A stretch of DNA of 64,000 bases from Gekko japonicus. Taxonomy: Eukaryota. The stretch is from assembly GCF_001447785.1 (NCBI RefSeq), contig NW_015175988.1, positions 657,286 to 721,285 on the forward strand. Direction: 5' to 3'. The notes beneath the pieces are model-generated. The model searched no databases. It was given only the letters and a program-made list of their open reading frames with translations, and was not told where the DNA came from. The position numbers and the translations under genes were made by a program. Below, in pieces: positions 17,686 through 57,779 of the stretch. Every line of letters begins with the position of its first letter. Positions within the stretch are counted from its first letter, which is position 1.

Positions 17686-17739
17686 TCATTTGCCCTCTTT
17701 GAGTAAACCAGCAATTTCCCCAAGCAAGAAGAGAATGAC
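17686..17739 (-). CDS. Trihelix gene putative last coding exon
   Basis: actccatag| [17 protein letters not shown]; phase 0; amphipathic helix-like end. Confidence 0.5.
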   Translation of the reverse strand, partial: VILFLLGEIAGLLKEGK

Positions 17740-20700
17740 CTATGGAGTTTTAAATTACTTTGGGACTGCTCAATAGCATTGATGCATGTTTCCTCAGGAC
17801 CATATTTATTTTGTGGAGGTGTGTGTATTTAAGTGGTATACATGAGGATGCTGTACATGGGGGCTGGTAGTATACTTTTGCTTACACTGTGGTCTGATGT
17901 GCAGTGTAATAAGAAAGAATATAAGAAAGATCCTGTAGTAGTGGCCACCTCTAAACTCTAGTTTCTAGTTGCAACTACAGAAAGCTCTTATAATGCAAGA
18001 ACAACTGCTTTTTCTTAAGCTGTTGGTAATATAGATAAAGCTAAACTATTGGAAATTATTTGCATGGAGTTTTTCTCAAAAGCCTTTGATACGGAGCTTC
18101 TTAAAGATAAGCTCAGTAAATAAATAGTCAAAGATTACAGGCCAAAGTTTTTCTGTCTGGTTAGATATTTAGACACATCTTTAAAATGGGACATGGGAAA
18201 CAGTTTAAGGATATGCCAGTCCAGAGATCTCAGAGGGGGAAAAATGTGATACAGTTCCCTGTGCTATAAAATCAGCAAGCAATTGTGATTTTAGTTTTAT
18301 TATAATTAAATTATTCACAGTCAAGCAAAATGTGTTCAAGAAACCCATGGAACTTAATTCCAAGTGAGTACATTTAGGACTGGAGTTGCAATCAGAGTCT
18401 TGCATTGGCTCCTTTAGATTGTAAGTTTTTCATGTTGTTTTGTTGTGTAAGTCTGACTAAGGGTGAAGCAACAGAACTGCAGAATTTTAAAGGCATGACG
18501 CAAAAGCATTGCTAAAATTATGCAGACTGGACCCCACTCAGACATGTTTCTGTGGGTCTTGTTCAGTAAATTTATGCCAGGACTAAGAGGATTAAACCCT
18601 TGAAATAATTTAAGGAAGAAAACAACATTTCTGCCCTTATGCATTGTGTCTACATTATATTTGTTAAACAATGAAGCAGTTTCCTGAGTTAACTGCTAGC
18701 ATTTGATTCCATAATATAATGAAAACAAGAAAGAAGTGTGGTGTGGGAATTCGGATAAATTATATTCTGCTAGTTTGGACCACTAGTTCCCATTTAGAAG
18801 TCCCTTCTGGAATCTGTTTATTTTGCACAACAGTCTTATAAGAAAGAACAAAAAAAATTAACTAACCTGTTGTACTCCAGGGAGAACACTATCTAGCTGT
18901 ATTGCATTGGAATCTTGTATTTCTTCCTGTTTGTAAAATCTCTCTAGCAGTGTCCTTTGGCTGTGGATGACAGAATGCATGCTCTCAGATATACTTTCTG
19001 TCTGAGTTGCTACATTATCAGAAGCACTCTTCTTGAACAGAACAGGTGAAGGCTCTGTAAGGAAAAGGTGCTTATTACTTCAGAGAAAACATGTATTTGT
19101 TGAGCCTATGATGAGCTAGGGTTGCCAGGTCTTACCTGGGTCTTGGTTGGGAGCTCCAGCCCGGCTTCTGGAGTCTTCTGGAAGTGATGTCATCGCACTG
19201 GGCACATCTTGCGGGGACACTGGCATTTGGGTAAAAAACTCTATGGTCACCATAGAGTTCTTACCCAACTGCTAGAGTGTCCCCCGCACAACATGCCCGG
19301 TGACATCTGGGTGACATCATCACACTGGGTGCAGCAGGTCTCTTTGGGGGCGGGGCTCCCCTGCTGACTGGCCAGCAGCAGATTGGGGGGCCAGAAAGTA
19401 GGGAAAACCCTGCCCCCATTGGGGGGGTTGCAACCTTATGTTGAGCACATTCTAACGTAGCAACCGATGGTTCACGTCTCAACAGCTAAGAGAAACAAGT
19501 ACTTGTGAGGTCATTCACTTTTTAAAAATCTGGCACAACTGCCAGAGCGATCCTAAGCAGGTCTGCTCAGAAGTAAGTCTCATTCAGTTGGATTTACTCC
19601 CAAGAAAGTGTTTTTAGGATTGTAAATTTAAGGGAACTCCAGACTCCTGCATTTAATCATCAGAACAACCTGGTGATGTTGACTAATTTGAGACACAGAG
19701 GCTAATATACTGAAACCTAAGAAGGCTCACCTAATTTAACTCATGTAATGTAAATGAACTCAGGCATTTTTTCCTGAAATGGGTAAGCTCTGTGAACATT
19801 ATCCAGCTGAAATTAAGCATGTAACCACTTTCCATTTCAATAGGACTTAAATTCATTTAATACTGGTAGAATGTACCCTGGGGGGGGGGGGGGTTTATCC
19901 TCCATGACTGTGCAATGACAAATTTTTCCCCATAGAATGCTGTGCCAAGACTGGGAGAACTGTAGTGCCTGACTCTTACTATCAGAATGCACAGTACAGA
20001 AAAATGAAAACTTTCTTATTCTTCTCTTAATTTTAACAAATACCAGGGGGGGTTTGCTTATGGAGATATTATTGTCCTCAGATCAAAATTATTCCTATTG
20101 CACAAGGTAGCAATTCTTCTTCGTTCTGAGGTTAGACTTGCCTGTTTTCCTTGGTCTGTCTGCTACATGTGGATGCCATCATGTCCCATCATTTTCTGAT
20201 ACAAATTTCTGTTATGGAGCCAGTTTGGTGTAGTGATTAAGTGAGGTGGACTCTAATCTGGAGAACTGGGTTTGATTCTCCACTCCCCCACTTGAAGCCA
20301 GCTGGGTGACCTTGGGTCAGTCACAGTTCTCTCAGCCCCTGAAATAAACCTAACTCACCACGAAAAGAGCTAGAGTTTCAGTCTGCCAGATAATCTTCGA
20401 ATCTCCTGGCCATACTGCACCCACTGTCATGTGATAATTAATTATCCAAGCGTATTTCTTTGGTCTGCATGGCAGACCTATGAAGTCAGCTCCCTGTCTG
20501 TAATCAGGGGCTCTGGAAAAGCTGCTTGTTCAGCTCTCAGGGCCCAGTGTAGGGATTAATTACCAACAGCATGATATTGGTATGGATCTCACTACTCCAC
20601 CAGGCTAAGTTTGGAGACTTCCTCTAATGGGTGCCACTTAGGCTTGCTACCGCCCCCGTTAGAGCGGGGGGTCCCCAGATTTGAGATCCCCCCACCCCCG

Positions 20701-23700
20701 CTTTTTGAGAATTGGCCGGCGGGGGGGGGCACGTCTGCCTTCAAAGAGTCTAGTCCGCTACTCGCCTCGCCTCCTTAGCGCCACCCACTCCCGGCATCCC
20801 TCCTTTGGCGGGCGATCTGCCTGTGTGCCGCCTGCATTCCTCCCAAGCCCTCAAGTGACATCACTTGACCTTTGACCTGGAAGTGGCATTTCTCCTGGCT
20901 CCACCCCCCATACTGCTCCACCGGGCTAAGTTTGGAGCCTTCCTCTAACGGGTGCCACTTAAGGTTGGATCTGTGCCATTGTGTGCAACTAGTAATAGTC
21001 TTAGCATATGAAGAAAAGCATTTGCATTGGAATGGACATACGATACAACTTTATCTGCATTGTGCATAAATGATAAGGGCTGTATTGACAGTATGTCATA
21101 TGACTAAAAACATATTCAATCGCATTAATATTTATTGGGTGATTCACCACATGAAGTGGCACCCACTGCAACTTATACATACCAAAGTCAGGTATGTGAG
21201 TCTGTCCTTGTATGCCATTCATGTGGTGGTCCTGTGAGCACAAGCCTCCTAAGATGGGGACAGAGCACTGATTTCATCTTTTATGGCCTGTTCCTGTCAA
21301 ACAGCGAATCCTCACAGTGGAATAACAACAAGAAATTCTTACCATCTTCAGATGCTTTTCTCTTGACATTCAAGGACCCGGCATCCATGATTGCTTCTGT
21401 AACTGTATCTTTTAAAAGACAATAATAAACATTGTGACAACATTGTGGTCCAAATGCATTGCTCAACTAGATAACACAAATACATTGTTAGTTTGAGGAA
21501 GATAAGAATGTAAGAGAAGCCAATGTTGGATCAGGCCAATGGCCCATCCAGTACAACACTCTGTCACACAGTGGCCAAAAATACCAGGTGCCATCAGGAG
21601 GTCCATCAGTGGGGCCAGGACACTAGAAGTCCTCCTACTATTTGCCCCCCCCCAAGCACCAAGAATACAGTGCATCACTTGCCCCAGACTGAGAGTTCTT
21701 GTCTATACCCTGTAGCTAATAGCCACTGATGGACCTCTGCTTCATATAATTTGAAGTCATAAGCAAGGGAAATTCTGGAACTGCTACATTCTCTTTTGGC
21801 AACCCTGTCAGGTTCCCAAGGCAAGACATTCAGAGGTGGTTTGCCATTGTCTGCCTCTGCGTAGCGATCCTGGACTTTCTTGGTGGTCTTCCATCCAAGT
21901 ACTAACTGGGGTCGACCCTGCTCAGTTTCCAAGATCTGACACAGGTCATGGCAGTGTTGCAGTAGACCTACTAATTAGAACTGGTAGGGGGAATTCACGC
22001 TCCAAAAGGGAAGGGATAGGAGGAAGATGGAGTGCATGATTGTGTGATATGTTAACCAACTCAAGAGATTTACACCAGCAGTAGTTATTAATGTTTTGAT
22101 CTGTTGGGATGTAAACTTGCTAGTATTGCATCCACAAGGTTTTAGAAGCATCTTTTTTCCTTTTCTCCCACAATATTGACTTCTGTAAAGCACCTGATAC
22201 TTTAAATTATTGTTCAATGTGGAGTCTGCAGTATTAGTTTCCCCGCCTGTGTGCATATACATACCTAAGGGCTGGCTTCTCAAAATGCAATTGATCTCAT
22301 CATAAAATCTCATCCTCCTTCTGGCACTTCCAAGCTGACTGTTGTCTTTTTGCAGTGCCCGGTATTCATATTTTAAGTTCTTGTATTTTGTCCGACACTG
22401 CTTCCAGTCTCTGTCTATTCCAACTTTCATTAACCTTCTGGCGATCTCCTCAAATATTTCCTTATTCCTTGTCGCTCCTTCAAGTGTTTGCTGGATTTCC
22501 TCATCCGACCATATATTTATCAAAGCTCTGACTTCATTATCACACCAGTGTTTTCCTACTCCTGCATCGTTAACTGTGATCACCCTAAAGTGGTTCTGTG
22601 CTTCATCCAAGGACATTTGATTTTCTGCAAGTAGATAATAAAGGAATTGGGGAAAAAAATAGATGAATATTCAGGAATTAAATACTTTGGCTCGTTTGCT
22701 GTAAAGCTGGTGGGAACTGAATACACTTCTGAGTTATAGTCACTGTGTATTTAATCAGGGAAGAGGGTCTGAACAGTATTTTTTGCATTGTCAGTGCAAA
22801 ATGGAACTGGGTACGGAAGGTCCTGCCTCACTGTTGTATATCATATATCCTCCTAACGTACTGCCCCTTAAAAGTATTTACTTCCTGGGCTGTTTTCTAA
22901 CAATGATGAAACATGTATGAGATTAGAAACAGAGACCATTAAATAATAAACCAGTGGTCCATCCTGTGGCAAAACCCGAGTCTCCAGAGTCTAAGATACA
23001 GTCTGGTCTCTAGGACTCACTTCCTATAGGAGGAGCTGAGGAGAAAAGTGGCACAGAGGATATACAGCTATTGCTGGAAATACCAGTTCTGCTTTCCTAT
23101 GGATGGATATATCTGGTCCGGGGAAGAAAAATTCCTAAATTATTAATGCTTGACTTATTAAACTCCTACTGAAACCTTGGCTGCTGGTGCAACGCAGACA
23201 GCGGCACAGCAAGTCAATATGCTCTTTGTGTAGAGAACAGAAATATACTCCCTCCCCCCACAAAAGGATCTGCAACTTCTCTGCATTCTGGATCAATAGT
23301 GCCCACACCCACCAATCACAGAGCAGCCTGCTGACAATACCGTCATGTCAGTCATACATTGAAGCAACAAAGTATGCAAATACTGGCACACTTTTTTGGT
23401 GTCATCCTGCCCTACGTACATGAAGTTCACAACGAAGGAAGGAACAAAAGAAACACGGTGCCCTCTGTTGTGGGGTGGACTGTGGCTTGCTCCATAGGAA
23501 CCCTATCACTATTACAGTCCTGGAAGCTCTGAAGGTGGGGGTTGAATCCCATTCCCCCAATAACAGACCCACAGGAAAGGAAGCATGGCTGCTCCATTCT
23601 TATTGCCCAGAAGCCCCCACAGAAAGGCCATGACCTCTACCATTCAAGAGTTCAGCACTGGGACTAGGACAAGAATGCCCTTAGGAGCAGCTTTTTGCAA

Positions 23701-26700
23701 AGCAGGTGGTGAGGGAGACACTCACTAAGTCAGAAGCAAGAGAACGCTCAACAACTGTTAAACAGTCCGAGCATTTATTGGACTTTATCTGAATCCCAGT
23801 CGGATGAACGAGGCTACCAGTCCTCTTGTTTCATCAAGATTCCCGTGCTTTTTAAAACGGCGTTGACTGATCACAGGATGGTAACCCTGTTCCTATCACT
23901 GAATGCTCATGTACAACTCTACTGGTCAAACAGTGGTGTGTTAAACAGTGGCAGGAACGTGGCTACAGCTAGAGAGCTGGCAATGGCACAGTAGAACAGC
24001 TAAATACACAGTCGCTGCATTTGCTGGACATGCTGTCGGCTCAGCAGATGGTTGTCGTTGCACTCTGAGCAGGGTCCATCCTGGCCTCTGCCCCTGTTTG
24101 AGGGCTGCCTGGAGGAAAAAAAACAACACAAGGAGAGTCCTGAGTAAGGTTCTGCAGTAGCAACCAACACAGCATGCATGGCCGAACACTCTGCACATTG
24201 AGTGAGGTATGTGTTTGAGAGAGTGGCCCCTCCTCCGTGCTCCTCCAGTTCATATGCCTCTCCTGTGGAGGTCCCCACATGACAGGATTCACCTGTTATG
24301 GGGGAGAATGGAGTCATTAGGCCAGTGGTGGCGAACCTACGGCACGGGTGCCAGAGGTGGCACTCAGAGCCCTCTCTGTGGGCACGCGTGCCATCGCCCC
24401 AGCCAGGCCCAGACCATCATTAAAGTGTCGAATTCTCTGCCAAATAATTTTAAGTAAATGAAAGCATTTGGGATTGCTTTCCTTACTTTGTTTGGATCAT
24501 CTTAAGTTAATGGATGGGTTGTTTTTTTCTAAAGTAAAACCTCAGTGTTCAGGTTAAATTGCCATGTTGGCACTTTGCGATCAATAAGTGGGTTTGGGGT
24601 CGCAGTTTGGGCACTCGGTCTCTAAAAGGTTCGCCATCACTGCGTTAGGCCAATACTCACCCGTCCTTTGTAGGCAGCTGCATTAGAATTCTTATCTGCA
24701 GTTTGGGTTGCTGTGTGCGGTTCTAATCCTGTAAGCAAAAGGGGCTGTTAGTGTTTGGTCAGCAGCAGCCATTATTGGCATGACTAGGAATCACCCAGAA
24801 ATGTGAGCGCGAGCCTTATTTTTACCCACATGCATGACACTGTGATGATATTTTTCCAGCATTATCTCCAAGGGGGGCTGTTTCTGTGCCTCCTACTAGC
24901 CCCTGTTGAAAGAGAATTGCAGAGTCAGTATACAATAGGTATGTTTATTTATATTGTGGGGGAAGGGGAAGATTTACAGCAACTGACATAGGGGTTTTCC
25001 TTATTTGCTTACCTGTGTATGGTGTACAGTCCTTGCATCTCTATTAGGAGGAACGGAGGATCCAGTTTAGTGGCTGCATCCTAAGGTGGATTACCTGTAA
25101 ATGTTCTGAGCACAGCAGCATTTGACAGTATGCTATAGCAGTTTTCCCCTCATTCTTGGCAAAGTTATTATTTATTTTAAAAAATTATTAGCCACCTTTC
25201 TGCCTCACGGCACTCAAGGCACCATACACTATTTTTTTAAAAAAAAGTTATAGAAAAGATGACAATTTAAAATCTAAGTTAGGACTGCCGATAAATAAAA
25301 ACCAAATTGGTGAAATGCAGTCCTAAATAAAATTGTCTTCAGCTTCCTCCTGAAGATGAAAAGTGAGGGGGTTGGGTGCAACTTCCTGGGGAGGTTTTCC
25401 ATAATTGTTGGGGCTGCCACCGAAAAGCCCTCTCTCATGCGCCCATCAGTTGAGCTTCTTTGATTGGTGGGACAGTCAGGAGGGACTTTCCGTGTGATCT
25501 TAACAGGTGGGAACATAGATAGTCCTCCAGATACCCTGGTTCCAAGCCATGTAAGGCTTTAAAAGACAAAACCAATGCCTTGAACTTAGGAGTGGATCGG
25601 TAGCCAGTGTTATTGCTGTAGTATTGGGGTCACACACTCCCGATAACTGGCCCTGACCAGCAGTCTAGCCACAACTTTCTGCAGTAGCTTCAGCTTCTGA
25701 TTCTGAACACTCTTCAGGGGTAGCCCCAAGTAGAGTGCATTGCATTAGTCCAGTCTAGATGTAACTAAGGCATGGATCACTGTGGCTTGCTCTGACTGAC
25801 CCAGGAATGGATGCAGCTGCACCAGGTGAAACTGGGCAAAAACACTCCAAGTCACTCAGGCACCTTTTCTAAGGTGACTGATGTGTCAAGCAGCAGTCCC
25901 AAGCTGCCAACCCATTCCAAGAGAGGAGGTATCTCAAGTCTGGTCGGCCTTTCTACTGATCCAGAGAACCTTTGTCTTGTCAGGATTAAGTTTCAGTTGG
26001 TTCACCCTCATACAGTCCATTACTGACTCCAACCACCAGTTCAGAACATCAATAACATCTGTAGAATTAGGTGGAAAAGAAAGGTAGAGCTGAGAATCAT
26101 CTGCATACTGGTGCCACCACAGCCTGTATCTCCTAATGACCTCTCCTAGTGGCTTCATATACATCATAAATAGCCCAGGGAATAAGATGGGAACCCTGTA
26201 GGACCTCACAGGTGACCAGTCATGAGGCAGAGCAGGAATCCCCCGACACTGTCTTCTGAGACTAACCTTCCAGAGAGGACTTGAAGCACCATAATACGGT
26301 GCTCTTTTGTCCCAGCACAGAGAGGCAGCTCAGTAGGTACCATGGTTAATTAGTATCAAAGGCCACTGAGAGATCCAGCAGAACTAGCAGGGTCACATTC
26401 CCCCTATCTAGTTATCAATAGAGATCATCAACCAAGGTCACCAAAGCAATCTCTGTTCCAAATCCCAGCCTGAAGCCAGATTGAAATGGGTCTCGGAAAT
26501 CAGTCTCTTCCAAGAACCCTTAAAACTGAGAAGAAACCATCTGCTGTAGCACCTTGCCCAAGAATCAAAGATTGGATACTAGCTGGAAATTCTCCATCAT
26601 AATAGGACTCAGGGAACTTTTTTGTGCAAAATGCTCATCTTTTAGCATTCCTGTCACATGCATGTTCTAAGTGCATACAACACCAAGACAGATGTTACCA

Positions 26701-29700
26701 CGTGCCCAATTATCTGAGATACGAGTGTCCTGAGTTGGGTTCATATAGACTGTAGAAGAGCTATGACTGGCGGCAGACTAAATCAGTATTATGAGTTGCT
26801 CTGGCTGTGTAGATATGGTTGGAGGCACATGAGAAAGGTTTGCTTTTGTACTCTCATTGAATTCAATAGGACGGTTTGTATTTATGCCAGTGTACACATT
26901 ACACCAGCTTCAAGACGTGGCCTGGCCGAGGTGGCTTAGAGGATACAGGCTAAGCTCTCCTCTGCTCTCCTGACACTGCATATTTCTGGCTTCTATGCCA
27001 GTGTAGTTTCACCATTGCTGAGTTCACACTAGTATAGCATCGGCCGGGTGCTGTGCCAGTGTTTCATCGATTTATGCAGAAGGCTTAGATGCTATCCTAA
27101 GCAGTTTACATGCTGGTTTTAGGTTTGCACCCTAAAAGTGCTAGAAATTTCATTCAGGTTGAACATAGAGCAGAGGTTACTGGGTGAGTGGGGTGGTAGT
27201 TGTGGATTTCTTGCACAGTGCAGGGGGTTGGACTAGATGACCCTTGAGGTACCTATCAGCTCTATATCTCTATATATAGACTACCAAACCAGAATGGAGT
27301 TTAATGAGTATCCTGTGATCATAGCTGAGTGTCTTTTAGGGCAATCATAACAGCGAGGGGTTCTGGAGTTATATACTAAAATTATAGATTCTACACTGGA
27401 AACATTATTCAAACCATATTCATGCTGTTATTACTTAAGTCTTTCACTGAATATTCACTGTAAGTTGTTCCTGTTGTTAACATCTTCCTGTTGTTAACAT
27501 CTATTTTGCCTTCTTCCCCCCTGTCCATGAAGTGGCCATCAGTGAGAGTTGGAATGGGGATCGGTTCTTTGCTATCTGATTGTCTTAATGTTGTACTAAT
27601 ATTTTATCTGATTTTATCTTGTTTGAGCTATGGCTGTACGTCGCCTAGAGCCCTGCAGTAGCAGGGGTGGGGTGATTCATAAATACAATAAATAATAATA
27701 ATTATTATTATATTTGGGTCAAAATGTCCATACTCCCCGACCTTCTCATGGCCTTCCTCTCTGTTTCTCCTTCCCTCCCCTCTGTGATTCCTCAGTTTCC
27801 CTTGTACCCATCTCCCCTCTTCTTTGCTTCCTAATGAAACAAGAGGGATATATCTATAAGCAAAACATGTAAGGAGACAGTTGACATCAGTAGGGAAAAG
27901 GTTATGAGTAGGAAATGAATTATAGAAAACATTTAAGAGTAAAGAACAAGAAGGGGAGAAAAGACAAGAAGAAAACAGCTATTAAGATCATGGTTGTGAT
28001 GGCCATGGTAGGGATTACTAGTCAACATAGGTTTCACGGGAACTACCCCAGATGTTTTGCAGTTCCTCTGTATTGTTTTATTCTTGGAATAGGCTGCAGG
28101 AATCAACAAGTTGACTCAGAGCTCAGTTTTGGAGGTGCTTTCCAGTGCTGCAGTATAACATATTTTGCTACTCTTAGGCACCAGGTAAGTTGATATCTCT
28201 GTAGGCTTCTATCCCGGAATAAGTTGCAGGATTGTAAAAGTAAAAGGACCATAATGATCACATCTACTGTGATGTGATGACATGGCAGTTGGCTAGTGGG
28301 GAGCTGCAGCTCCTGTAGCTGTCACCTGTGGCAATACGAAAAGGAAACTATCTGTGATCCATTAGATATTCCTGCTATAGTAAAATGGCAGCCGTGTATT
28401 CGGTGATCGCTTTTGGATATGCTTCTTTGTTGTCAGGCGTATGAAAATCAGCATTCAGTACTGGAGGGCTAGAAATGTATGGACCAGGATTTGTGAGGCA
28501 GAACATCCCTTCTTCCCTCCAGCTATCAGATGCAAAGAGTTAAATTACTTGCCTGCCTCTGTTATCTTTTTACATATTGAAAAACCAGAAGCATCCTCTG
28601 AGGCTGTGCTGATAGAATCCTCATCTGTAAAAGAAGAGAGAGATTTCCCCCCCTTTAAAATATTGCTCAGTGGGTTCTCCTAGTCAGTCCTAGTCCGTAG
28701 TTCCTTGGCAGCTATCTTTCCTCCTTTGTTCTCCTTCTTCTACTTGCAATTTTGTAAAATGCCCACAGTATTCATGACTAGCAAGGCTTTTGTTTCCTTA
28801 TAATGCAACCTGCTTTCATTTGTAGTTTTTGCTGTGCTAACTAGGTGCACCTTTGAAGATCAAAAAGTACCACTGTTGATAATCCCATCTGATGCTAACC
28901 TAAATTTGGAGCACATGTGATATGCAGCCTGATTCAGTACATGCTTACTTGAAAGTAAATTCCATTCAGATTAACGTTGCTAGGCAAGTCTAATATGCAG
29001 TTCTAGTATGCATAGAATTGTAGCCTTGTCCAGACTGAAAGCTATTTCAAATAGGCACTTACACTTCCTGCTCACATTTTGTGCCTGCCGTTGCTAAGAA
29101 TATCAAGATAACATTATTTTGGACTGATGCTCCATTTGTGTGAACTCCCTGAAGGAGAAAGCCAGCTGGTGGGAACCTGGATGAGAGCCGTCTTTATTAC
29201 ATATTACTCTCTGTAACACTATATTGGCTGGCCTCCATGCACAAGATAAAAGCAGCATAACTGGGCCACCCACATACAATGTAGCTGTCCATGCACTTGG
29301 AAGAGTCCCCAGGTACATTAACCAAAAGTGGGGGAAATCCTTTTAAAAACTGGCCCGATGAAAATGATTTAGAACAGATGGGCTTTTGTGGGCACCTGGT
29401 GGTCAATGAAAAAAACAAGCAGAGGGGGTAGAAATCGGCCTGCTTAAGCCCCTGAGAGTTCATAGAATCCTAGAAGGGGAGATAGTGAAGTGCTTGTTGG
29501 GATTTCCAAACTGTTTCTACCAGGGGTCATTTCATAGAAAAAGAGGAACAGGAGCTCATTAGCACAACTCATTAGCATAACTTATTTGCATATGCCACAC
29601 CCCCTGACATCACCAGAAGTGTGGCAGAAGGCAACACCCACCGCTCAGGCTCCACTGGACTGTTTTGGATTGCTAGCTATTGGGGGGGGGGGGAACGTGC

Positions 29701-41700: not shown

Positions 41701-44700
41701 TCTTCCTCGCCAGCATCTCTGTGCATTTCTGGGTAAAATGTTAAAGGTTATGGCATTACTTTTTTTTTTAAAGTTACAACTGAGGACATTCTATTACAGT
41801 TCTTCTAAGAGCCTTTAAAATAAATCAAGCAAGAAATGTTTTAGCTGTTCCACTCTGAGTCCCAAGTAGTCAAAACTGAGTAGTTCTCATTGATAAAGCA
41901 CCATCACTAGGCAGTCAGAGAGGAGCCTCATCCAGTGAGGGATTTACAGCTTTAGTTTCAAGACACAACACAGAAAGAAAAGGTGAACGTGAAACCTATT
42001 ACTAAGCCCCAGCCAATCTGACTACGTAACACATATGTTTGTGTGTCCCTAGGCTATTCTCATCAAGTCTTATTTTACTTTAACTTACAAGCTCATGAGT
42101 AACATATTATATGAAAGGCATCAGTCATATATAAACTGTCTTCTAACTACTTAAAGTTATGACAGTTAATGCATTACCAGCTAACTGGAATTCTGCTTCC
42201 AGAAAGTGTTCACTAGACTACTGTGTTTCTATACTACTTGCTTTGAATATTTGGTTGTCATTGTTGAAAAATATTAATATGCTGTACCTTGCCTAGGAGG
42301 AAAAAAGCATCAGACTGATTTGGAACAGATTGTAAATGAACATCAGTACTGAGACTATCCAAGGAGACTATCACCTGGGTGCCTCAGTGTTACTACCCCT
42401 GTACATCTAATTCGGTTGAAAAACAGGAGTGGACAATCACATTCATGATATATCACACCCGGCTCTTTGGGTGTGCTAAAATCATTGTGCTAATAGTTTT
42501 CAGATCAGTGGTTTTGGGTTTTAAAAAAATTATTATCATTGTTATTATTTTATTAGATGTACTAATTGCCCTGTCCCAGCTTACACCGAGCTCTGGGCGA
42601 TGTACAAAAGGTAGCAATGCCATAAAATTTACAAAAACATTAAAATTCATTATACAACTTAATAAAAATTACAACACAGAGTAAAAGATCCAAGATGGCA
42701 TCCTATAATATTATTTATCCCAATTCTGGACTACCAGCCCTTTTCTGGGCAGTCACTGGGGGTGTGGAGGGGGAGGAATTTGTGAATTTCCTGCATTGGG
42801 CAGGGGGTTGGACTAGATGACCCTGGAAGGTCCTTCCAACTCTATGGTTCTGTGATTCTATTTTATTTCGGTTTCAATTGGAAGTGATTTTTAACTACTA
42901 TTGTAAGTCGCCTTGAACCATGAGAAAAGGCAGTGTATAAAAGTTTTAATAGACCAATCAATATTCAAGTGTGATGTAGTGTTCAGAGTGTTGGACTAGG
43001 ATCTTGGAGACCCACGTTCGAATTCTCACTCTGCCATGGAAGCTGTCTGGGTGACCTTGGGTCAGTCACATCCTCTCAGCCCAACCTACATCACAGGGTG
43101 GTTGTGAAGATAAAATGGAGGAGAGGAGAGGATGTAGATCGCCATTATAAATAAAGTAAATAAATAAAAATAATTTCTGCAGCTTTGAATTTGTTTGAAT
43201 ATAGCATTGAAATCACACTTTATTTTTCTCTAATTATATATTTGAGTTCAAGTATTTGTTGGTTTGGAGTCATAAAATTAACACTGGGTACTTTAAAAAT
43301 GTTATTCACTAAATATGTCAAAATAAGTATGTCAAATCAGATCATGCTCTATTTCAGGTACTGGAAAATTTTATGATTCATATTTTCCAAGAAAATCCAC
43401 ATCACTGGTCTCTGTTCAATTTTGTTATTTGTACTATAAATTTAAAAAGAAATACATGAAAGTTTACATTCTTGTGTGTTGGATGTTGTTGTTTTCATGC
43501 CTTTTAAATACATATAATTCTACTTTATAACTAAGAAACAAAATAAGTTTGGTAACTAAAATCCTTACCTCTGCAATTTCTTTCTATTTTAACTTCTGTC
43601 CGTTCTTCTGGCTTCTTGCTGTTGTTTTCTGATCTGCTTGTTTTATCTGCACTGCCGTGTCCCAGAATAGCATCCAGTTCTCTAAAAAACTTCATACTTT
43701 TGCTTGTGTTGCCTGAAAACTGAGCATTTTTTACACTCTTATATTCATGTTTTAGATTTTTATATTTTGTCCTGCACTGTTTCCAATCCCTATCAATTCC
43801 AAACTTTTGAAGTCTAGCAGCAACATGTTCAAATATTCTTTTGTTTCTCACTGTTCCTTCCAGTTGCTGCTGGATGCTTTTGTCTGACCACACGCGTATT
43901 AGAGCTCTCACTTCGTTGACAGTCCAATGTTTTCCTCCTTCATTTGCTACAGACGGAATAAAGGGTGGGTGTTTTGAAGTATCTAGTATTGCTGTTGGGT
44001 TACCTGCATCAGGTAGGATAGGAGAGAGACATAGATATGTATTACCTGCATTGGGTAGGGTGGGGTCAGGATCAGGTAGAGACAGTGAGAGAGAGAAGTT
44101 TTGTTAACTTTTTTCCCTTGCCAAGAATATTCAGGCAAACCTCAAAAAACAAACTCAAGATACAGGACAGATTTTTAATATACACGACTGATTTTAAAAT
44201 ATTTCACACTAGGTTAGTATTATAAGGATTATGAAAGTTAAAAAAAAAAAATCCCAAAGAGAAATGGAAGCTGACTGTTCTGTGATGGTCGTTGTCTCTG
44301 AATTCCATATGTACAATTAAGCCTACTATACAGGAATAACACTTTGAGTTAAGGGCAAATCAGCCACCCGTCTGTAACAGTTTTTTGAAGCAGTACATAC
44401 TCTTTCAGTACTGATTTTTGCATTTCACTGTTAAGTAGATTTGAGTTGTTCCATATATTAACTAGTTAATTATCTGAATACCGGAAATTATGTGGGATAA
44501 GTTGGTTATGTGGTCATATACACACATACTTAACAGTGCAATCCTAAGCAGAGCTACACCATTTTATATGTGTAAAAGTGAATGGGCTTAGAAGGGTATA
44601 ACTCTGTTTAGGATTGCACTGAACATTCTTGTTATTTCTGTGTTTCAGATTAATATATAGAAGATATCTGTTATACAACAGCTGGGATCCAGAGTACTCC

Positions 44701-47700
44701 ATGCGTGCATATAATTGTTTTTCAGCTTCCTTTTTCTGGTAGCAACACACTGAAAAGCCTTCCTAAAGTCAAAGTATTTTACTTTGACTTTGCCTTCCTG
44801 AACATCAGGGACCGTTTAGTACCACATGAGATGTGGAAGAGTACTGCTAGAAGACAATCCTACAAGCATGTGGATGAGCTCTATGCATAAGAGGAGCTGC
44901 CTGGATCCTGGACTGTGAAGGGAAAGGAGCTTGAGTATGTTTTGTGTATCCCCCCCCCAAACTAATCTCCCTCTGAATAGCATATGTGTCCCATTTGTTT
45001 ATCTTCATGCACTCCTATAAAAGCAAATAATTATGTCTTATAGTTTATTAAGAAACTACCACCAGTTTTGCACAAGTAGACAATGAGAAACCAACCTCAG
45101 ATCTTAGCTACACACTCTGTAGCAGTGGTCCACAATGTGGAGCCCATTATCCAAAGCAAAGAGCCAGTCCTGGTTTCCCTCCACCTCACTGGAGCATGAG
45201 ATATCTCAGAAGAGCCCAGGAAGCATGATTAACAACCGCCTTCATCATAGGAGGATGTTTATAATGCAGCTTCCTGATATTTTGAAAGCAGTCCCAACCC
45301 CCGGGCATCTATTTTTTGTGGTTGGTTGTACCCTCTGTGACAGCCATTTTGTGATAGCATCCCTTCATATTCTTAGAATTCCAAAAGTGCCCACAGGTTT
45401 GACAAGGTTGGGGACGCTTACTCTATAGTCTTCTGCAATTGTTTCTTCCATTGCTTACACAACACACAGAATCATCATGGTGTAATAGAGTGTCAGACTA
45501 GGTTCTTGGAAACTTCAGTTTGAATCCCCACTCTGCCATGGAAGCTTGCTGGGTGAGCTTGGGCCAGTCACTCGCTCTCAGTCTAACCTACCTCACAAGG
45601 ATAAAATAGAGGAGAATGATGTAAGCTACTTTAGGTCCCCGTTGGGGAGAAAGGCAGGATATAAATAAATTTAAAATAATTTAAAGAAATATAATTCCTG
45701 TGCTCTTGAAAAGACCTAGGATATTTCTTCTCACGCACACATCATCATTCATTACCTAGCTGGATGGGCCTGCAATGAGAAATAAAAAGTAATGGATTTG
45801 CAGAAGCGTCTTCCTCATCTTTAAGTAAGGCTTCACCTGGAAGGAAAAAAAGAAGAGATTTAGTATGTAGAAAAGTCAGAGAACATGTTGAAATATACTG
45901 TGAATGATGTACATGGTAGATTCTGGTAACGACCCACCATCACTGGATACTTCATTTACATCTTCTGGATAGGACTAGGGTTCATGACTACCTTAAACAT
46001 TTAATCTTAAATCATTTAAAAAATAGCTGAGACTGAGAATGGAACATGGACTAAAGAAGAGTCAGAAGTAAAGGACTCCTTGCAGTTCATTTCCAGAAAG
46101 GGAAATGTTTTCTACTTAGTGTATCATTATGTTGTCAGGCTGGATGTTACAGGGAGGTCATGTAACCCAGCAAAGGACTGTTCATCCTCTTACATTCCTT
46201 AGGAGCATCAATGAGAAGCTTCTGGTTCCCTTGAAACCACTATATACACATAAGGCGTGTTGCTTTCACTTGTCTCTCCTGATCAGTCTCAATATTATTA
46301 GCTACTTTAATGTATTATAGTGTATCGAGGGCATTGATGGAGATGTTTTCTGATACAACCAGTATGTTTGGCAAAACATATGCAAGCCAAGCAAGCTTTA
46401 ATCATAACAAATTCTGGGTAGTCAGTATATTGCCAAACAATGATGGGCTGTCCTTCCTCTATGAATCAGGAAAAAAACACAACAAAACAGCTGTTTGGTG
46501 CCTCTGCATAAAACATCCAGAAAATCTCACTGTTCTAACAAACTGACACTAAAAGCGGTTCAGGCAGTTTTCAATTTATGTTTTTGGAATCCGGATGCTT
46601 AGTTGAACTGAAATTAATAAGCTATGTAACTCCAAAACTGTCCAATTACAGTTGATGTGTTTTGTTCAGTCAGTTGAGTTAGGAACTCTGCCAAAAACAT
46701 ACAGGAATAAAACCTGCAGTGGTAAAATGTGGCCCACTCCAGGAAGAAATGAAAGTGTGTAGTTATTCACAAAAGTGGCTACAAGTGCCTTCTTCTTCTG
46801 CAATTCAGTCCCGTTCATACTGGCCTTTCTTCATGCAGTCAGGCATCCCTGTGCACAGGGGTGAGGAGGAATTTGACATCATGAAACAATCCACAGTTCA
46901 TAAAAGCCAAATCTGCTTGTTTCATTAAGATAGAATGATATTTCTGTAAGAACTTGACATGGATTAACAGTGCTATCCCTCAGCAGAGTTGCACATTTCT
47001 AATATGTTAATTCTGCTTATGATGGCACTGTAAACCTCCTTCAACCTTCTTCTAGGAGAAATCTCTGGAACATGAGTAGAGCAGGGCTTTTTCCTGGCAC
47101 GGGATCACAGCCCTAATAGCCAGTGTCTGTATTGGATGCTTCATTGCTGTATTCTCTTTGATGACAATACTACTTCATGAACATATGTGTGCAACACAGA
47201 GACTGAGCTCTTGCAGGAAATTTTAATGTACTAACTAGCCCTAAAATGTAACTGAATATCACTCTGTGGAAGAGTTAAAAGAATGCAGAAGGGGGAAAGG
47301 CACTTAATCCCCCCTCCCCAATAAACATCTGTGTGATCCATGGTAATGGTTCCTTTAAATTAGGGGTCTTTGTTTTTCATGTGAATGCTAGAAAATGAGG
47401 TGTGGTGGGCTTATATAGCTAAAAGGTTTTGAGAGAAGGATTGAAAATTGTGTTGCTGTAGTCCAAGCGACAGCCAAAAAATGTGAATTGTCTAAGCAAG
47501 ACCTCTAGACATTTTCAACTGTTTCTTTGGTAATTTCTCTCAAAGGGATGATGACTTCTTGGCAATTCTTTTGAAATGCAGCCCCCCCCTCCCCAACATG
47601 TAACCTTAATTAGTATTTGTTTTTGGAAGTCTATAGGTAATGACTTTGCATTTTTTATTTAACACACACACACACACAGCCAAGTGTGATGGGCATTTTT

Positions 47701-50700
47701 TGCCCTTATTGTTGAAAGTAGATATCTGACAGAGAATGCTTTAAAAAGACAAAACAGAACAGCAATTTAAAATATTCTCCCCAAATGTGATGCAAAAGTA
47801 AATCTCATATTAGAGAGAAATAGTACAGCAACTGCCTTCTTTTATTATTTTTGTGGGGGGGCTGTTTGTTATTTTTGGCCTTTCTAAATTTTATTTTCGG
47901 GTTTTTCTTTTTAAGGAACAAGCAAAAATAGATTTCATGGCATGCCATCTTGGAGGGCTGGGGGTAAAAGATGACAGCTGTCAGAGTACGAAGCTGCTTG
48001 GTGTGACATTTCAGTCCTTGACAATCAAATGACTTAAAAACCACATTGTACCTGTGTGTTTTTTTTTAATTTTTAGCCTGTTAGCAGTCATCCAGAGCTC
48101 ATGGGGGGGGGGGGGGGGATGAACTGCAAAAGGAACAACATTTCCTCCTCATTCCCAATGTGCGACTTTCAATCCTGGACCTTTTTATTTTCATTCCAGC
48201 TCTAGATAAATTTCTCATTTAGAGCAGCTGAAATCTTTGTACCGTACATTACTCATCCCACAATTATTTTTTCCCTTGCACTGGACAGCTGCAAAAAATG
48301 TGATATCAGCTGTAAAAGATAAATCACCAGTAAAAAAAAGCAATAGAACCGGAGGGAGGGCCCTGCTGGGTTTGCTCCCCCTTTACAGAAATAGTATCTC
48401 CTGAATCTGACTGTAGCAGCTAGTTTAACTTCATCAGGTTTATGTATTTATAGAAACGCTAGTGTGCATAGCCACCCCACCCTGCACGCACACAAACACA
48501 CGCCGACAAGGAGGGAGTGAATTAAGTCAGTTTGTTCTACCAACTGTGCCATCTGTGGTGTATTATGTGGCTTTGAATCATGGAAGCCTCTAGGTATTTT
48601 AGGTAAAAAAAATAAGAAGGAAAGAGAGCTTTTTTTTACCTTCATTGTTCTCTCTGGTGGCATTTATGATCTCATTTGCTGAGCACCTGCCGTTTTCTTC
48701 CTCTTTTAATTGTGTGACAGGTTCATGTTGCAATATGGCATCCAGTTCATGGAAAAACTTCATGGTCTTTGTAGCATCTCCTGAGTTGTGGGCATATTTA
48801 ACTGTCCTATATTCATATTTCAGGTTTTTATACTTTGCACGACATTGTTTCCAGTCTCTGCAGATCCCCAACTCCTGCAGCCTTTTAGCAATGTAAATAA
48901 ATATCCCTTTATTCCTCAGTGTTCCATGGAGTTGCTTTCTGATATTTTTTTCTGACCAGACGCTTAACAAGGCTTTAACCTCCTCTTCAGTCCAGTGCCT
49001 TCCTGCTCCACTCTCCATGTTGAAAGTGACCTGGAAATGATTCACTATTTCTAGCCAAGATTTTGTTTCCTAGGAAACCAGACGGCTGGTTGTCAGTAAG
49101 CTCTACAGAGATGAAAGGATCTAGTTTTACTGGCTCAAGCTGCCTGAGGGGAGTAACTTGAGAAACTGCCAAATAAGCAGGTTCTGCATTTGAGGCAGGG
49201 AAAATAAAGCAGCTCAGGCGCAAATGATTGCAAAGTACTTTAATAATCGGCATCTAGAATAAGCTGCCTTCTGTTAGATAGAATTCTGAGCATAACCAAG
49301 TTATTTAAAACCCCTTTGCAGTAGACACGCTCTGATAAAAAACCTGGATTTGTTCTACGGTGTATTTATCCTGAATCATGATAGATTTGCACCCTGTTTC
49401 TTTTAAGAATTGCTAGCAATCCAGTGCCTTTCATTTAAATAGAATTTTTATTCTATAGCCCTAGGAGCACTACCAAAGTCTGTGATTCATAGACCACACG
49501 TGGCACAATCCTGTGCATGTGTACTCAGAAATAAGTCCCACTATCTTCAATAGTGCTTACTCCCACGTAAGTGTACATAAGACTGTACCCTTAATTCTGC
49601 AAGTTTACATCTGTTCAAGGTTACTCTGTTGTAAAGACAAAGCTACCAGTTTAGGTAAATTATGGACACGCATTTAGACATTTCATGGTTCGTATCAACA
49701 GAAAAGCTATAATTTTGTATTTTGAGAATTTGTGTTAGTACTTTTCTCAGGTAAAGAGCATTTGATTCTAGCAATTATATACTATTTTACAAACAAGAGC
49801 TTTTCTGTAAATCTATTAAAAACTCAGCATATCAATTCTTGCTGAATCTGTATGCATGCTACTAAAAACATACTTTGTTATGTATGTTTGAGGGGCCATG
49901 GCTCAGTGGTAGAGCATCTGCTTGGCATGCAGAAGGCCCTAGATTCAGTCCCTAGCATCTTCGGTTAGAAAAAGAAGAGGATAGATTGGATTTATACCCT
50001 GCCCTTCACTACCCAAAGGAGTCTCAGAGCGGCTTACAAACTCCTTTCCCTCCCCCTCCCCACAACAGATACTCTGTGAGGTAGGTGGGGCTGAGAGAGC
50101 TCTGACAGAAATTGTTCTTTTTCAAGAACAGCTCTGACAGAACTATGGCTTGCCCAAGGTCATCCAGCCGCTGCAAGTGGAGGAGTGGGGAATCAAACCT
50201 GGTTCTCCCAGATCAGAGTCCGCGCACTTAACCACTACACCAAACTGGCTCTAAAAGGGTCAAGTAGTAGGTGATGGGAAAGATGTCTGCCTGAGACCCT
50301 CGAGAGCCACTTGCCAGTCAGAGTAGACGTTACTGACCTTGAGGGACCCAAGAGTCTAATTCATGTGTTCATATGTATAAGGCAAACTGCAAGTTCCCTT
50401 AAACAACCAGTATGCTACTTTACATGTATGAAAAGAGGGTACCTGAGATCTCTGAATGTTGAATAAGACTCTCCGTTTATCCAGTGTGCATAGAAGGAGT
50501 TACATATCAGCAAGTATCGTTTGTGCAGAAAGCACATGTCTCAGGGGTAGAGCATCTGTTTTTCAGGCAGAATATTCCAGATTCAACCCATGGCATCTCC
50601 AGTTAAAAAGATCAGGTAGGAGATAATGTGAAAGACCATTACCCAAGACCTTGGAGAGCCTTTGCCAGTCAGGGCAGAACGCACTTGTGAAGAACTGGGC

Positions 50701-53700: not shown

Positions 53701-54829
53701 GATAATTTGGAGGCAATTTGGTGGTAAAATACATCTGTCCTACTTTCATCTTTGGTAAATGTATTTTCTGGGGATTTTTAGTATTGGTTCAAAACCCTGC
53801 TCGAATATAAGCATTACTAGGACTTACGACATTATGCGATTCATTAATTCATGTGCTTTAAGATTTTCTTCTGTTCCTGCAGAGGTCAAGAGAGTGCTGG
53901 GATTGTGACAAGTGATGGAGAATCAGCCCAATCCTTCAAAGTGCACAAGGTAAAATGGAAAGGTTGTTTATTATTTATGTTCTTAAAAGAAGTAGTAATA
54001 AAGAATCTGACCTCTTCTTACCATCTTAAAAAGATTATTCATAAAACTGAGGAGCATATACCACACATAAATGAGGGATATTTATTTATCTATTTATCGT
54101 ATGGCAAATGAGGGATAAACTTGATGGTGAGAACTTCTATTGTAAGCTTTAAGGAATTGTGTATAGAAGAATAAATAGGTGCAGGCAGTAGACAGAGAGA
54201 AACTGGAAGACAGGCATTAGCGCTTATATGGGCCCAAAATCTGAAGAAAGTTATTTTATAATCTGCTTTCTCTTTCTTAGTCATTTGTCTTTGATATGAG
54301 CATCCTCCTAACCAGTTATCCTACAATATATTTTAATGATGTATGTTTAGGAGGAGTGTTGATTTTAATAGTTTTATAATGTCATTATATGTTGTATGTT
54401 TTGAAGGGCAGAAAGACGGGGGTATAAACTCTGTAAATAAATGCATAAATATCTGTCCCGATGGCGGGACTGCACCCCCACCCCCACCGACTGCACCCCC
54501 AACCCCACCGAAACCAGCCACCCCGGCGCAACGCCGGGGAGAAGGAGCCCGCACCCACCGACGCTTACCGGGGCCGCCCATCGAGCGGGGAGGAGTGGGG
54601 ACGGCGGGGGTCGGTCCTCCGGCGGCCGAGAGAGGAGCGGGCGGGGCAGAGGCACGGCGGGGAGGGGAACCCGACACAGCAGGGGAAACGGGCGGCCGCG
54701 CTGGAAACGACAGCGGACGGCCTCGTACAGGCTCCGGGCTGGGAGACTCTGGAGCGGATGCCGCGGCAAGAGAGGCCGCGCCGGGCCAGAGGCCCGGCTC
54801 GAGGGCACGCCCACGCAGCCGGGCTCCAT
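17686..54829 (-). CDS. Antisense gene interleaved with PPAT: triple Myb/SANT-like (trihelix, MSANTD-type) DNA-binding protein, predicted 14 exons, ~788 aa
   Basis: Three domain exons plus short exons with good splice signals that join without stops: 54829-54569, 49069-48640, 45836-45756, 44003-43569, 41728-41639, 39815-39711, 37287-37207, 28624-28553, 24728-24661, 23096-23021, 22624-22265, 21408-21343, 19054-18867, 17739-17686 (2367 nt in total). Confidence 0.75.
18867..19054 (-). CDS. Trihelix gene penultimate exon (188 nt)
   Basis: ccttttccttacag| (E)[62 protein letters not shown] |gttagt; 62 codons open, phase 1-0. Confidence 0.68.
21343..21408 (-). CDS. Trihelix gene exon (66 nt)
   Basis: tgtcttttaaaag| (D)[21 protein letters not shown] |gtaaga; includes the basic patch KRK. 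Confidence 0.65.
22265..22624 (-). CDS. Trihelix gene exon with Myb/SANT-like domain 3
   Basis: tctacttgcag| [57 protein letters not shown]...[17 protein letters not shown]...[14 protein letters not shown] |gtatgt; 360 nt, phase 1-1. Confidence 0.9.
23021..23096 (-). CDS. Trihelix gene linker exon (76 nt)
   Basis: ccatccatag| [25 protein letters not shown] |gtgagt; phase 0-1 restores the frame into the domain-3 exon. Confidence 0.5.
24323..24642. mobile_element. hAT-type non-autonomous DNA transposon
   Basis: TIR CAGTGGTGGCGAACCT/AGGTTCGCCATCACTG; TSD CATTAGGC/CGTTAGGC. Confidence 0.85.
24661..24728 (-). CDS. Trihelix gene linker exon (68 nt)
   Basis: ttttgcttacag| (G)[22 protein letters not shown] |gtgagt; phase 1-0, paired with the next exon. 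Confidence 0.55.
25270..26610 (-). mobile_element. Decayed L2-type LINE reverse-transcriptase fragment
   Basis: PILF...[12 protein letters not shown]...[13 protein letters not shown]...[15 protein letters not shown] (RT YADD motif) and FSVAAPT...LP...[15 protein letters not shown]-terminus; frameshifted. Confidence 0.85.
28553..28624 (-). CDS. Trihelix gene linker exon (72 nt, GC donor)
   Basis: ctctctcttcttttacag| (D)[26 protein letters not shown]|gcaagt; phase 1-1. Confidence 0.65.
29521..29940. mobile_element. hAT-type non-autonomous element family B
   Basis: TIR CAGGGGTCATTTC/GAAATGACCCCTG; TSD GTTTCTAC/GTTTCTAT; ctcattagcat subterminal repeats. Confidence 0.85.
30358..30690. mobile_element. 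hAT-like element inserted in a 5S-derived SINE
   Basis: CATGGCC...GGCCCTG ends; TSD GCGAGGGG/GTGAGGGG; internal direct repeat agtgcctagggcccac. Confidence 0.7.
35860..36115 (+). mobile_element. L2-type LINE 3' fragment (similar remnant at ~31100-31470)
   Basis: cctgggtacttaaatgaccgtctc...ttttcagctgtggcatctcacctgtgaaac, resembling the L2 C-terminus. Confidence 0.6.
36282..36721. mobile_element. Non-autonomous DNA transposon (CAGGGC-TIR family related to B)
   Basis: CAGGGCTATTTT...AAAAAGCCCTG ends; shares gtggcctaatatgc/aatgagttcctg motifs with copies at 15620-15800 and 57177-57571. Confidence 0.75.
36951..37156 (-). mobile_element. hAT-type MITE family A, copy 4
   Basis: Reverse orientation; TSD GTCTCTTT. 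Confidence 0.9.
37207..37287 (-). CDS. Trihelix gene linker exon (81 nt)
   Basis: tttacacag| (E)[26 protein letters not shown] |gtgagg; phase 1-1. Confidence 0.7.
39711..39815 (-). CDS. Trihelix gene linker exon (105 nt)
   Basis: ctctttgcacttctag| (A)[34 protein letters not shown] |gtgagt; phase 1-1. Confidence 0.72.
40195..40906 (-). mobile_element. Solo LTR of a related subfamily
   Basis: Shares ctgctgccaccaggaatt..aaattccaaa, gtggccctgagga.ggactg and the aaacatttaaaga...atcattaca end with the 58734 LTR. Confidence 0.7.
41639..41728 (-). CDS. Trihelix gene linker exon (90 nt)
   Basis: ttttacccag| (E)[29 protein letters not shown] |gtaaac; phase 1-1. Confidence 0.7.
42968..43170 (+). mobile_element. 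Older tRNA-derived SINE (related copies ~955-1140, 9995-10227, 12375-12620, 17262-17440, 31735-31945, 45475-45670)
   Basis: gggtgaccttgggtcagtcac...cctacctcacaggg...gataaaatggagg core with an (AAAT)n tail. Confidence 0.75.
43569..44003 (-). CDS. Trihelix gene exon with Myb/SANT-like domain 2
   Basis: gatgcag| (G)[57 protein letters not shown]...[17 protein letters not shown]...FFRELDAIL...NCR |gtaagg; 435 nt, phase 1-1. Confidence 0.9.
44533..44621. repeat. Short hairpin element family (gcaatcct...aggattgc; many copies, e.g. 12760-12930, 19545-19625, 37695-37780, 49503-49590)
   Basis: cagtgcaatcctaagcagag...ctctgtttaggattgcactg, ~90-bp imperfect palindromes. Confidence 0.7.
45123..45420. 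mobile_element. hAT-like non-autonomous element (diverged)
   Basis: Starts CAGTGGTCC; TSD CTCTGTAG/CTCTATAG. Confidence 0.6.
45756..45836 (-). CDS. Trihelix gene linker exon (81 nt)
   Basis: ttttttccttccag| (G)[26 protein letters not shown] |gtaatg; phase 1-1. Confidence 0.7.
   Translation of the reverse strand: MKPYLKMRKTLLQIHYFLFLIAGPSS
48640..49069 (-). CDS. Trihelix gene exon with Myb/SANT-like domain 1
   Basis: Branch-point-like tactgac then tttcctag|GAA; ...[48 protein letters not shown]...[17 protein letters not shown]...FFHELDAIL...NNE G|gtaaaa. Confidence 0.9.
49970..50252 (-). mobile_element. tRNA-derived SINE (Squam3-like) inserted in a tRNA-Ala-derived SINE
   Basis: Reverse complement of the 2898 element; the host SINE head (49892-49965) and tail (50253-50385) flank it. 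Confidence 0.8.
51805..52234. mobile_element. hAT-type non-autonomous element family B (GC-rich core)
   Basis: TIR CAGGGGTCATTTCG/CGAAATGACCTCTG; perfect TSD ATTAGAGC. Confidence 0.88.
52694..52899 (+). mobile_element. hAT-type MITE family A, copy 5
   Basis: TSD CTCACATA/CTTACATA. Confidence 0.88.
52932..53113. mobile_element. TAGGGTTGCC-TIR MITE (related copies ~19117-19437 and ~56397-56642)
   Basis: TAGGGTTGCCAG...CTGGCAACCCTAG terminal inverted repeats. Confidence 0.75.
53883..53949 (+). CDS. PPAT: PPAT exon 2
   Basis: ttcctgcag|A GGT CAA GAG... = (R)[22 protein letters not shown]|gtaaaa. Confidence 0.96.
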
Positions 54830-57571: not shown

Positions 57572-57779
57572 TATACCATAAACTTATATTGCTTTTATAC
57601 ACTAATTATTATGACTTTCCCCCAAAGAATCTTGGGGATTGCAGTTTGATAAGGGTGTTGAGAATTCTGTTTAAAATTCCTGTCTCCCCCTCCAGTCATT
57701 CTTTCCCCAGAACTACAATTTTCAGTATTTCCTAGGAAGAAGGAACGATGGCTAGCCATCTGAACTATTGATGTTCTTA

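Follow-up and report, generated by a model that had tools for sequence, protein, structure and literature searches.

What is encoded on the opposite strand of PPAT in the genome of the gecko Gekko japonicus? The question was raised by a preliminary description of a 64,000-nucleotide (nt) stretch of contig NW_015175988.1, referred to here as the window and used for all coordinates, in which a hidden antisense gene with three tandem Myb/SANT-like (trihelix) DNA-binding domains was proposed to lie inside PPAT. The evidence collected below makes it likely that the window holds an intact gecko copy of an ancient vertebrate gene, present once per genome and without a curated name, whose product would be a nuclear DNA-binding regulator with two encodable endings.

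The gene is recognised by its three trihelix domains, termed D1, D2 and D3 in protein order. Inspection of the open reading frames (ORFs) in the window gives stop-free minus-strand stretches at 48602-49069, 43534-44103 and 21978-22670, and the three exons proposed within them are confirmed as stop-free and bounded by real splice edges, with a donor GT after 48640, AG and GT around 44003-43569, and AG and GT around 22624-22265. Their suggested identity as Myb_DNA-bind_4 domains is borne out by the Pfam profile PF13837, which is 89 positions long and has a gathering cut-off of 27 bits. D1 scores 69.6 bits (E 3e-19, profile positions 2-89), D2 73.6 bits (E 2e-20, positions 2-89) and D3 67.4 bits (E 1.5e-18, positions 2-87), giving three full-length matches far beyond chance.

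The predicted fold is that of the plant GT-1 factor. A phmmer search of the PDB with D2 returns the Arabidopsis GT-1 trihelix (E 3e-6), and an AlphaFold2 model of D3, built from a 42-row alignment, is all-helical with a mean predicted local distance difference test (pLDDT) score of 78 and values of 84-96 in the core. The helices of this model span residues 28-38, 41-49, 54-66 and 73-92, with one later helix, and its best Foldseek match in the PDB is the GT-1 structure 2jmw (probability 1.00, root-mean-square deviation 2.0 Å over 64 columns, template modelling (TM) score 0.64 normalised by target length). Positions that are near-invariant across 42 relatives lie in the third helix, with the motif RDWKQCRxKYKNLK. 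A helix of the FFxxLxxIL type, read from the sequence, comes after the third helix and resembles the fourth helix of plant GT factors.

The remainder of the gene was mapped by aligning orthologous proteins from geckos, lizards, snakes, turtles and birds back to the window. Homology searches were done exon by exon, and the joins were checked by phase and split codon only. The outcome is a set of ten collinear coding exons, e1 to e10, running from 49018 to 18867 on the minus strand, in which the three trihelix exons and seven others are supported by protein homology. The features of the gene are as follows, the identities being those of the encoded amino acids.

49019-49030, minus strand: upstream exon part, 5' untranslated region (5'UTR), after the acceptor TTTCCAG/GTCACTTTCAAC; these 12 nt translate to VTFN.
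48640-49018, minus strand: e1, start codon (AAC ATG G context) and D1 (Pfam E 3e-19), phase-1 GT donor; 127/127 amino acids identical to Sphaerodactylus townsendi, 71-77% to D1 of gar, marsupial and whale.
45756-45836, minus strand: e2, 81-nt linker exon, phase 1/1, AG and GT sites; 79-85% to geckos (E 1e-9 to 4e-12).
43569-44003, minus strand: e3, D2 (Pfam E 2e-20), phase 1/1; 89-93% to geckos, 65-69% to gar and marsupial D2.
41639-41728, minus strand: e4, 90-nt acidic/Ser-rich linker, phase 1/1, with splice sites; 78-84% to geckos (E 1e-10 to 1e-12).
39711-39815, minus strand: e5, 105-nt linker with an IKEE (psi-K-x-E) motif, phase 1/1, with splice sites; 77-94% to geckos (E 5e-8 to 6e-15).
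37207-37287, minus strand: e6, 81-nt acidic linker with an IKKE motif, phase 1/1, with splice sites; 70-77% to geckos.
28553-28624, minus strand: e7, 72-nt acidic/Ser-rich linker, phase 1/1, GC donor, placed by sequence and phase; 88-92% to geckos.
22265-22624, minus strand: e8, D3 (Pfam E 1.5e-18), phase 1/1; 90-93% to geckos, 65-72% to gar and marsupial D3.
21343-21408, minus strand: e9, 66-nt exon with a basic KRK stretch (candidate nuclear localisation signal), phase 1/1; 86% to one gecko orthologue.
18867-19054, minus strand: e10, last trihelix-specific exon, phase-0 donor CAG/GTTAGT; 83-90% to geckos (E 1e-25 to 1e-27).
18858-18866, minus strand: stand-alone end, codons V and S followed by TAA, from the sequence.
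18817-18822, minus strand: AATAAA poly(A) signal, 36 nt past the stop, from the sequence.

All nine exon-exon junctions are in phase 1, no stop occurs in any exon or split codon, and eight of the introns are of the GT-AG type with a single GC-AG intron (e7 donor at 28553, CAG/GCAAGT). The frame comprises 619 codons up to the e10 donor and 621 when this donor is left unspliced, since two extra codons (V, S) then precede a TAA at 18860-18858. Stand-alone orthologue models read through the e10 donor in the same way and have short, unconserved tails. As the internal exons are all in phase 1/1, exon skipping yields in-frame isoforms, and the annotated isoforms of orthologues include two-domain forms as well as forms without e2 or e6, the latter exon being missing, for instance, from isoform P0279. 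The linker exons carry acidic and Ser-rich runs together with I-K-K/E-E motifs that match the psi-K-x-E SUMO consensus, and the 'KRKA..ED' block at the end of e9 is also found in marsupial, whale and snake proteins. No significant Pfam match was obtained for the seven short exons or the C-terminal exon.

The gene is widely shared among vertebrates. A HMMER search with the third trihelix exon against 1.84 billion representative sequences matched multi-domain proteins, and further searches brought the collection to several hundred orthologues. These come from ray-finned fish (gar, sturgeon, catfish and many teleosts), amphibians (a frog and, listed with it, a tetrapod with a giant genome, protein P0009), turtles, a crocodile and very many birds, squamates (geckos, lacertids, agamids, iguanians, a teiid and snakes) and mammals (marsupials, carnivores, bovids and other ungulates, rhinoceros, pangolin, whale, tree shrew, rodents and primates). 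Matches in rays, at 41-49% identity, may be either orthologues or paralogues. The suggestion that the gene might be restricted to a lineage such as the sauropsids is contradicted by orthologues with the same domain order that extend from gar and teleosts to marsupials, whales and primates.

The three domains have kept their individuality over this range. Domains of the same number are 65-77% identical between the gecko and gar, marsupial, whale or giant-genome tetrapod, whereas the identity between domains of different number is 40-59%. In a maximum-likelihood tree of 68 domains, with support from the Shimodaira-Hasegawa-like approximate likelihood ratio test (SH-aLRT), the D1 split has a value of 98, the D3 clade 91 and the D2 clade 80. 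Each clade includes gar, teleosts and tetrapods, and the triplication therefore predates the split between ray-finned and lobe-finned fish. In the tree, teleost D1 is highly diverged and the second domain of the whale protein is a D3; two-domain forms without D2 occur in some mammals (whale, primates and bovids). The third domain of P0009 groups with D2 rather than D3, which suggests a duplication of D2 and the absence of a D3-type domain from that model.

The nearest proteins are those of geckos, namely XP_048364837 of Sphaerodactylus townsendi and that of a second gecko, with identities per exon that are lowest in the linkers (70%) and highest in e1 (100%). In the Sphaerodactylus comparison, which is with another gecko family, all 127 residues of e1 are identical as against 85% for PAICS exon 2, and these figures argue for strong purifying selection. 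At the protein level the trihelix gene has the marks of a single-copy, syntenic and long-conserved host gene, with conservation over more than 400 (roughly 430) million years.

These observations bear on whether the exons could instead be decaying relics of Harbinger-type transposons, a pseudogene or several separate genes. For Myb_DNA-bind_4 domains a descent from Harbinger Myb-like genes is presumed (PMC9392472), and fish and reptile genomes contain numerous multi-copy relatives. Against the present exons being decaying relics, a pseudogene or separate genes, the 1857 coding nt contain neither stop nor frameshift, the splice sites are intact, and one-to-one collinear orthology extends over roughly 430 million years. 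More than 150 orthologue models hold all three domains in one protein. The preliminary view of one intact, intron-rich gene and not three is upheld. A relic, pseudogene or set of separate genes is hardly credible as an explanation.

Where the intact orthologue begins and ends differs from what was first proposed. The window contains two CpG islands, one at the PPAT/PAICS promoter (5.7-7.5 kb) and the other in PPAT intron 2 (54.4-55.2 kb), the latter being relevant here.

54400-55200, no strand assigned: CpG island in PPAT intron 2, from CpG statistics; candidate promoter and non-coding first exon.

This island has a GC content of 0.56-0.72 and a CpG observed/expected ratio of 0.63-0.92, against a window mean of 0.29. 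The preliminary description placed within it the start codon, ATG 54829, of a protein of about 788 amino acids encoded by 14 exons that reached to near 17686. Such a protein has some basis in the sequence, as ATG 54829 has about 150 open codons with possible donors at 54569 and 54559, and the frame 5' of the e1 Met is open back to 49069. Yet the frame that ATG 54829 opens is Pro/Leu/Arg/Gly-rich, as translated CpG-island sequence, and the N-terminal extension it would provide was found in none of the 229 orthologous proteins that carry the N-terminal motif; 226 of these 229 start at the e1 Met (49018). Two Pogona models are eight residues longer, and the last four of these added residues, VTFN, are what the 12 nt next to the 49030 acceptor encode. 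Moreover, below 18858 no coding exon was supported by homology when the gecko, lizard, snake, turtle and bird orthologues were mapped on the window. A 14-exon protein is very improbable. Because the orthologues start at the e1 Met, the CpG-island exon is read as 5'UTR, and the stretch earlier translated from 54829 is probably untranslated. In place of the eleven further exons first predicted, orthologue mapping supports seven, making ten coding exons in total; the ORF shrinks to 621 codons, with its start at 49018 and its stop at 18860-18858.

The other end of the gene leads to PAICS, a connection missed by the preliminary description. The exons of the two neighbouring genes that fall in the window are listed here.

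3376-3573, minus strand: PAICS exon 2, N-terminus of SAICAR synthetase (Pfam SAICAR_synt E 1.6e-12; NCBIfam purC).
5886-5940, minus strand: PAICS exon 1, 3' part, with acceptor (first base 5940), 12 open codons, ATG 5904 and donor after 5886.
6959-7097, plus strand: PPAT exon 1, start codon at 6959, from translation; 3' edge uncertain.
53884-53949, plus strand: PPAT exon 2, between the CpG island and e1, from translation and AG and GT flanks.
56151-56357, plus strand: PPAT exon 3 (best match NCBIfam purF, E 4e-20; Pfam GATase_6).

PPAT exon 1 starts at 6959 and exon 2 at 53884, so that PPAT intron 1 is about 47 kb long. It contains nearly the whole minus-strand trihelix gene, and PPAT exon 2 sits within the putative first intron of that gene. 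The proposal of a gene antisense to PPAT is borne out, and the two genes are interleaved. In the window the trihelix gene is thus inside PPAT and upstream of PAICS on the PAICS strand; in other species the same placement is indicated indirectly, by the PAICS fusion models and by a gar model that runs antisense through PPAT exon 1. PAICS exon 2 is 98.5-100% identical to gecko PAICS.

The phase-0 donor of e10 can be joined in frame to the acceptor CTTTCCAG, with 5940 as the first base of the exon, and from there 12 open codons of the PAICS leader lead to the PAICS ATG at 5904 and on to PAICS exon 2. Gecko fusion models align precisely at 5886-5940. The last intron of this route extends from 18866 to 5941 and holds PPAT exon 1, on the opposite strand, and the bidirectional promoter. 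With a read-through stop at e10 and an in-frame acceptor in PAICS, the window can thus encode a stand-alone protein as well as a fusion of the trihelix part with PAICS. The fusion is common in annotation. About 85 of the best 120 sauropsid matches are long PAICS isoform models with Myb_DNA-bind_4, SAICAR_synt and AIRC domains (PF13837, PF01259 and PF00731), and such models also occur in many mammals, gar, sturgeon, catfish and the giant-genome tetrapod. Matching junctions are seen in more than 80 annotated fusion proteins from birds, turtles, crocodile, marsupials and placentals, with a junction peptide of 6-14 codons that is in frame in every lineage seen; one gar model translates the antisense of PPAT exon 1. 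The constant junction frame would fit selection on the frame, with the caveats that out-of-frame cases cannot show up as protein models, which is an ascertainment bias, and that the PAICS leader is a GCN/Ala-rich triplet repeat whose length shifts in threes anyway.

It may be asked, then, whether the trihelix exons are simply the upstream half of a long PAICS unit, which would be transcribed from a distal promoter in PPAT intron 2 and produce mainly the fusion, the stand-alone protein being a by-product. The prevalence of fusion annotation in sauropsids, mammals, fish and the giant-genome tetrapod, the open passage from the e10 donor through 5940 to the PAICS ATG and the uniformly in-frame junction peptides all speak for such a unit. 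Against it stand the stop two codons past the donor and the AATAAA 36 nt later, which suit a dedicated terminal exon, and the stand-alone models that are also present in many species. Gene predictors, furthermore, easily merge neighbours on the same strand, and the two caveats on the junction frame apply equally here. Overall, a long PAICS unit of this kind is rather unlikely. A related and rather doubtful proposition is that the conserved product is at least partly a chimera of the three trihelix domains with the whole PAICS enzyme, spliced across the bidirectional promoter and held in frame since before the ray-finned/lobe-finned split. Were this true, the chimera could bring PAICS to chromatin or link purine metabolism with the transcription of the locus that encodes it. 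The transcript would also have to cross PPAT exons 1 and 2 in antisense, and in this way the unit could act as a regulator of PPAT.

For the gene with two endings, the favoured explanation, the following scheme can be envisaged. Transcription would probably begin in PPAT intron 2, where the CpG island would serve the gene as a promoter of its own, and the transcript would cross first PPAT exon 2 and then the 47-kb intron 1 in antisense. The predicted product of 621 amino acids would contain three GT-1-type trihelix domains, separated by short acidic/Ser-rich linkers with psi-K-x-E motifs and followed by the KRK patch. Its domain family suggests that the protein most likely acts in the nucleus as a regulator that binds specific DNA sequences; the basic third helices (RDWKQCRxKYKNLK) of the three trihelix modules may together recognise a composite site, whilst the acidic, SUMO-type linkers would recruit partners. 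At its end the transcript would either read through to the stop two codons past the last donor, with a poly(A) signal close by, or be spliced from that donor to the PAICS exon 1 leader acceptor, giving the in-frame fusion that is annotated in many species.

Several points weigh against this explanation. The Foldseek E-value for GT-1 2jmw is weak (0.24) despite a probability of 1.0, the domain tree comes from a quick search and not a finished careful one, and the case for constraint is made on protein identity only. Motifs suggest DNA binding, a nuclear location and a SUMO-related role of the linkers, and the gene itself is known here from its sequence and protein homology, with its transcription, transcription start site, exon use and two endings all predicted.

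The gene can be set beside several known systems. Within the vertebrate orthologue group the start (MESGAG...), the D1-D2-D3 order, the orthology of each domain, the linker and C-terminal exons, the site upstream of PAICS on the PAICS strand and the fusion junction are all as in the gecko gene, and there is no essential difference. Arabidopsis GT-1 and the plant trihelix proteins (PDB 2jmw, 2ebi) belong to the same family and have the same fold, with three helices around a conserved Trp/Phe core, a basic third helix and next an amphipathic helix with the FFxxLxxIL-type motif in common with the gecko domains. However, GT-1 is just about 26% identical to the gecko domain over 64 aligned positions, and its plant relatives contain only one or two domains, differ in their flanks and are unrelated to PAICS. 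Animal proteins bear 'GT-2/PTL' names through automatic transfer, which does not reflect orthology.

ZSCAN20 and ZSCAN29, which consist of a SCAN domain, two Myb_DNA-bind_4 domains and C2H2 fingers, resemble the gecko gene as vertebrate nuclear proteins with tandem Myb_DNA-bind_4 domains. In contrast to these and ZKSCAN2, the gecko gene has no SCAN or C2H2 part, has three trihelix domains and lies at another locus. Pfam finds no SCAN, KRAB or C2H2 domain in any exon of the window, so that ZSCAN or ZKSCAN names are misleading, and for the orthologues, too, the precomputed Pfam lists show nothing besides the PAICS domains other than PF13837, PF10545 and PF12776. MSANTD1-4 and NAIF1 (PMC9392472) are likewise single-copy, conserved trihelix Myb-like genes that are old, dating to the base of jawed vertebrates, but have one domain and few exons, whereas in the gecko gene three domains occupy one phase-1/1 exon apiece and the gene is tied to the PPAT/PAICS locus. 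MSANTD5 was considered as a name and rejected, as papers describe it as placental-specific and expanded in mouse, and no orthologue is so named. Other uncharacterised multi-trihelix proteins, with 5-8 tandem Myb_DNA-bind_4 domains, are found in alligator (P0002, 2166 amino acids, 8 domains), pike (P0007, P0011 and P0020) and whitefish (P0013, which also has C2H2 fingers). By their position in separate clades of the tree, these proteins are families outside the PAICS-upstream orthologue group.

Annotation has not overlooked the gene. RefSeq and Ensembl hold hundreds of models of it, under automatic names (trihelix GT-2/PTL, ZSCAN20/29-like, uncharacterized LOC...) or as the N-terminal part of PAICS isoform X1, and no curated symbol is among the names returned for the orthologues. 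It does remain functionally uncharacterised, as first supposed, in that no functional study of the three-trihelix gene was found in the literature; searches combining PAICS or PPAT with SANT, or using the automatic names, gave only plant or unrelated papers. A 2024 survey lists human LOC100506514 in one line as a newly recognised MYB/SANT protein (PMC11377751), and this protein shares a 90% cluster with the baboon orthologue. A survey from 2022 that covers Harbinger-derived Myb-like genes in vertebrates leaves out the gene and makes no mention of PAICS or PPAT, and domains of the ZSCAN20 type are flagged only as Harbinger candidates (PMC9392472). One more copy from a gecko is routine; it is the whole gene family that merits attention, as it is conserved over more than 400 million years, with one domain exon unchanged at all 127 residues between two gecko families, has no curated symbol, is interleaved with two purine-synthesis genes and is often annotated as fused to one of them. 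For annotators, the labels 'trihelix GT-2', 'ZSCAN20-like' and 'PAICS isoform X1' denote one and the same unit.

Some smaller features of the locus remain. The expected end of PPAT exon 1 (...GLQHR, 7087/7088) is without a GT in the plus-strand interval 7073-7099; a GT does follow at 7098-7099, in frame with the PPAT exon 2 acceptor, but its use would add the three residues E-G-G. This oddity could reflect a short insertion specific to the lineage, a donor that is non-canonical or, given the neighbouring N gap at 6781-6829, an error in the assembly. That run of Ns lies in the PPAT/PAICS CpG-island promoter, and a second run is found at 15214-15619. The intron between e7 and e8 contains a fragment of a long interspersed nuclear element (LINE), stop-free at 25937-26329 on the minus strand and with a reverse-transcriptase-like YADD motif. 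Repeat copies occur at 12202-12489 (minus), 15630-15827 (plus), 36280-36744 (both strands) and 57170-57646 (both strands). Their translations have the strings 'GVWPNMQRSSCY' and 'VANL.AS.NS.PV.S' in common, and this interspersed repeat, scattered in the PPAT introns, is probably an element resembling a short interspersed nuclear element (SINE).

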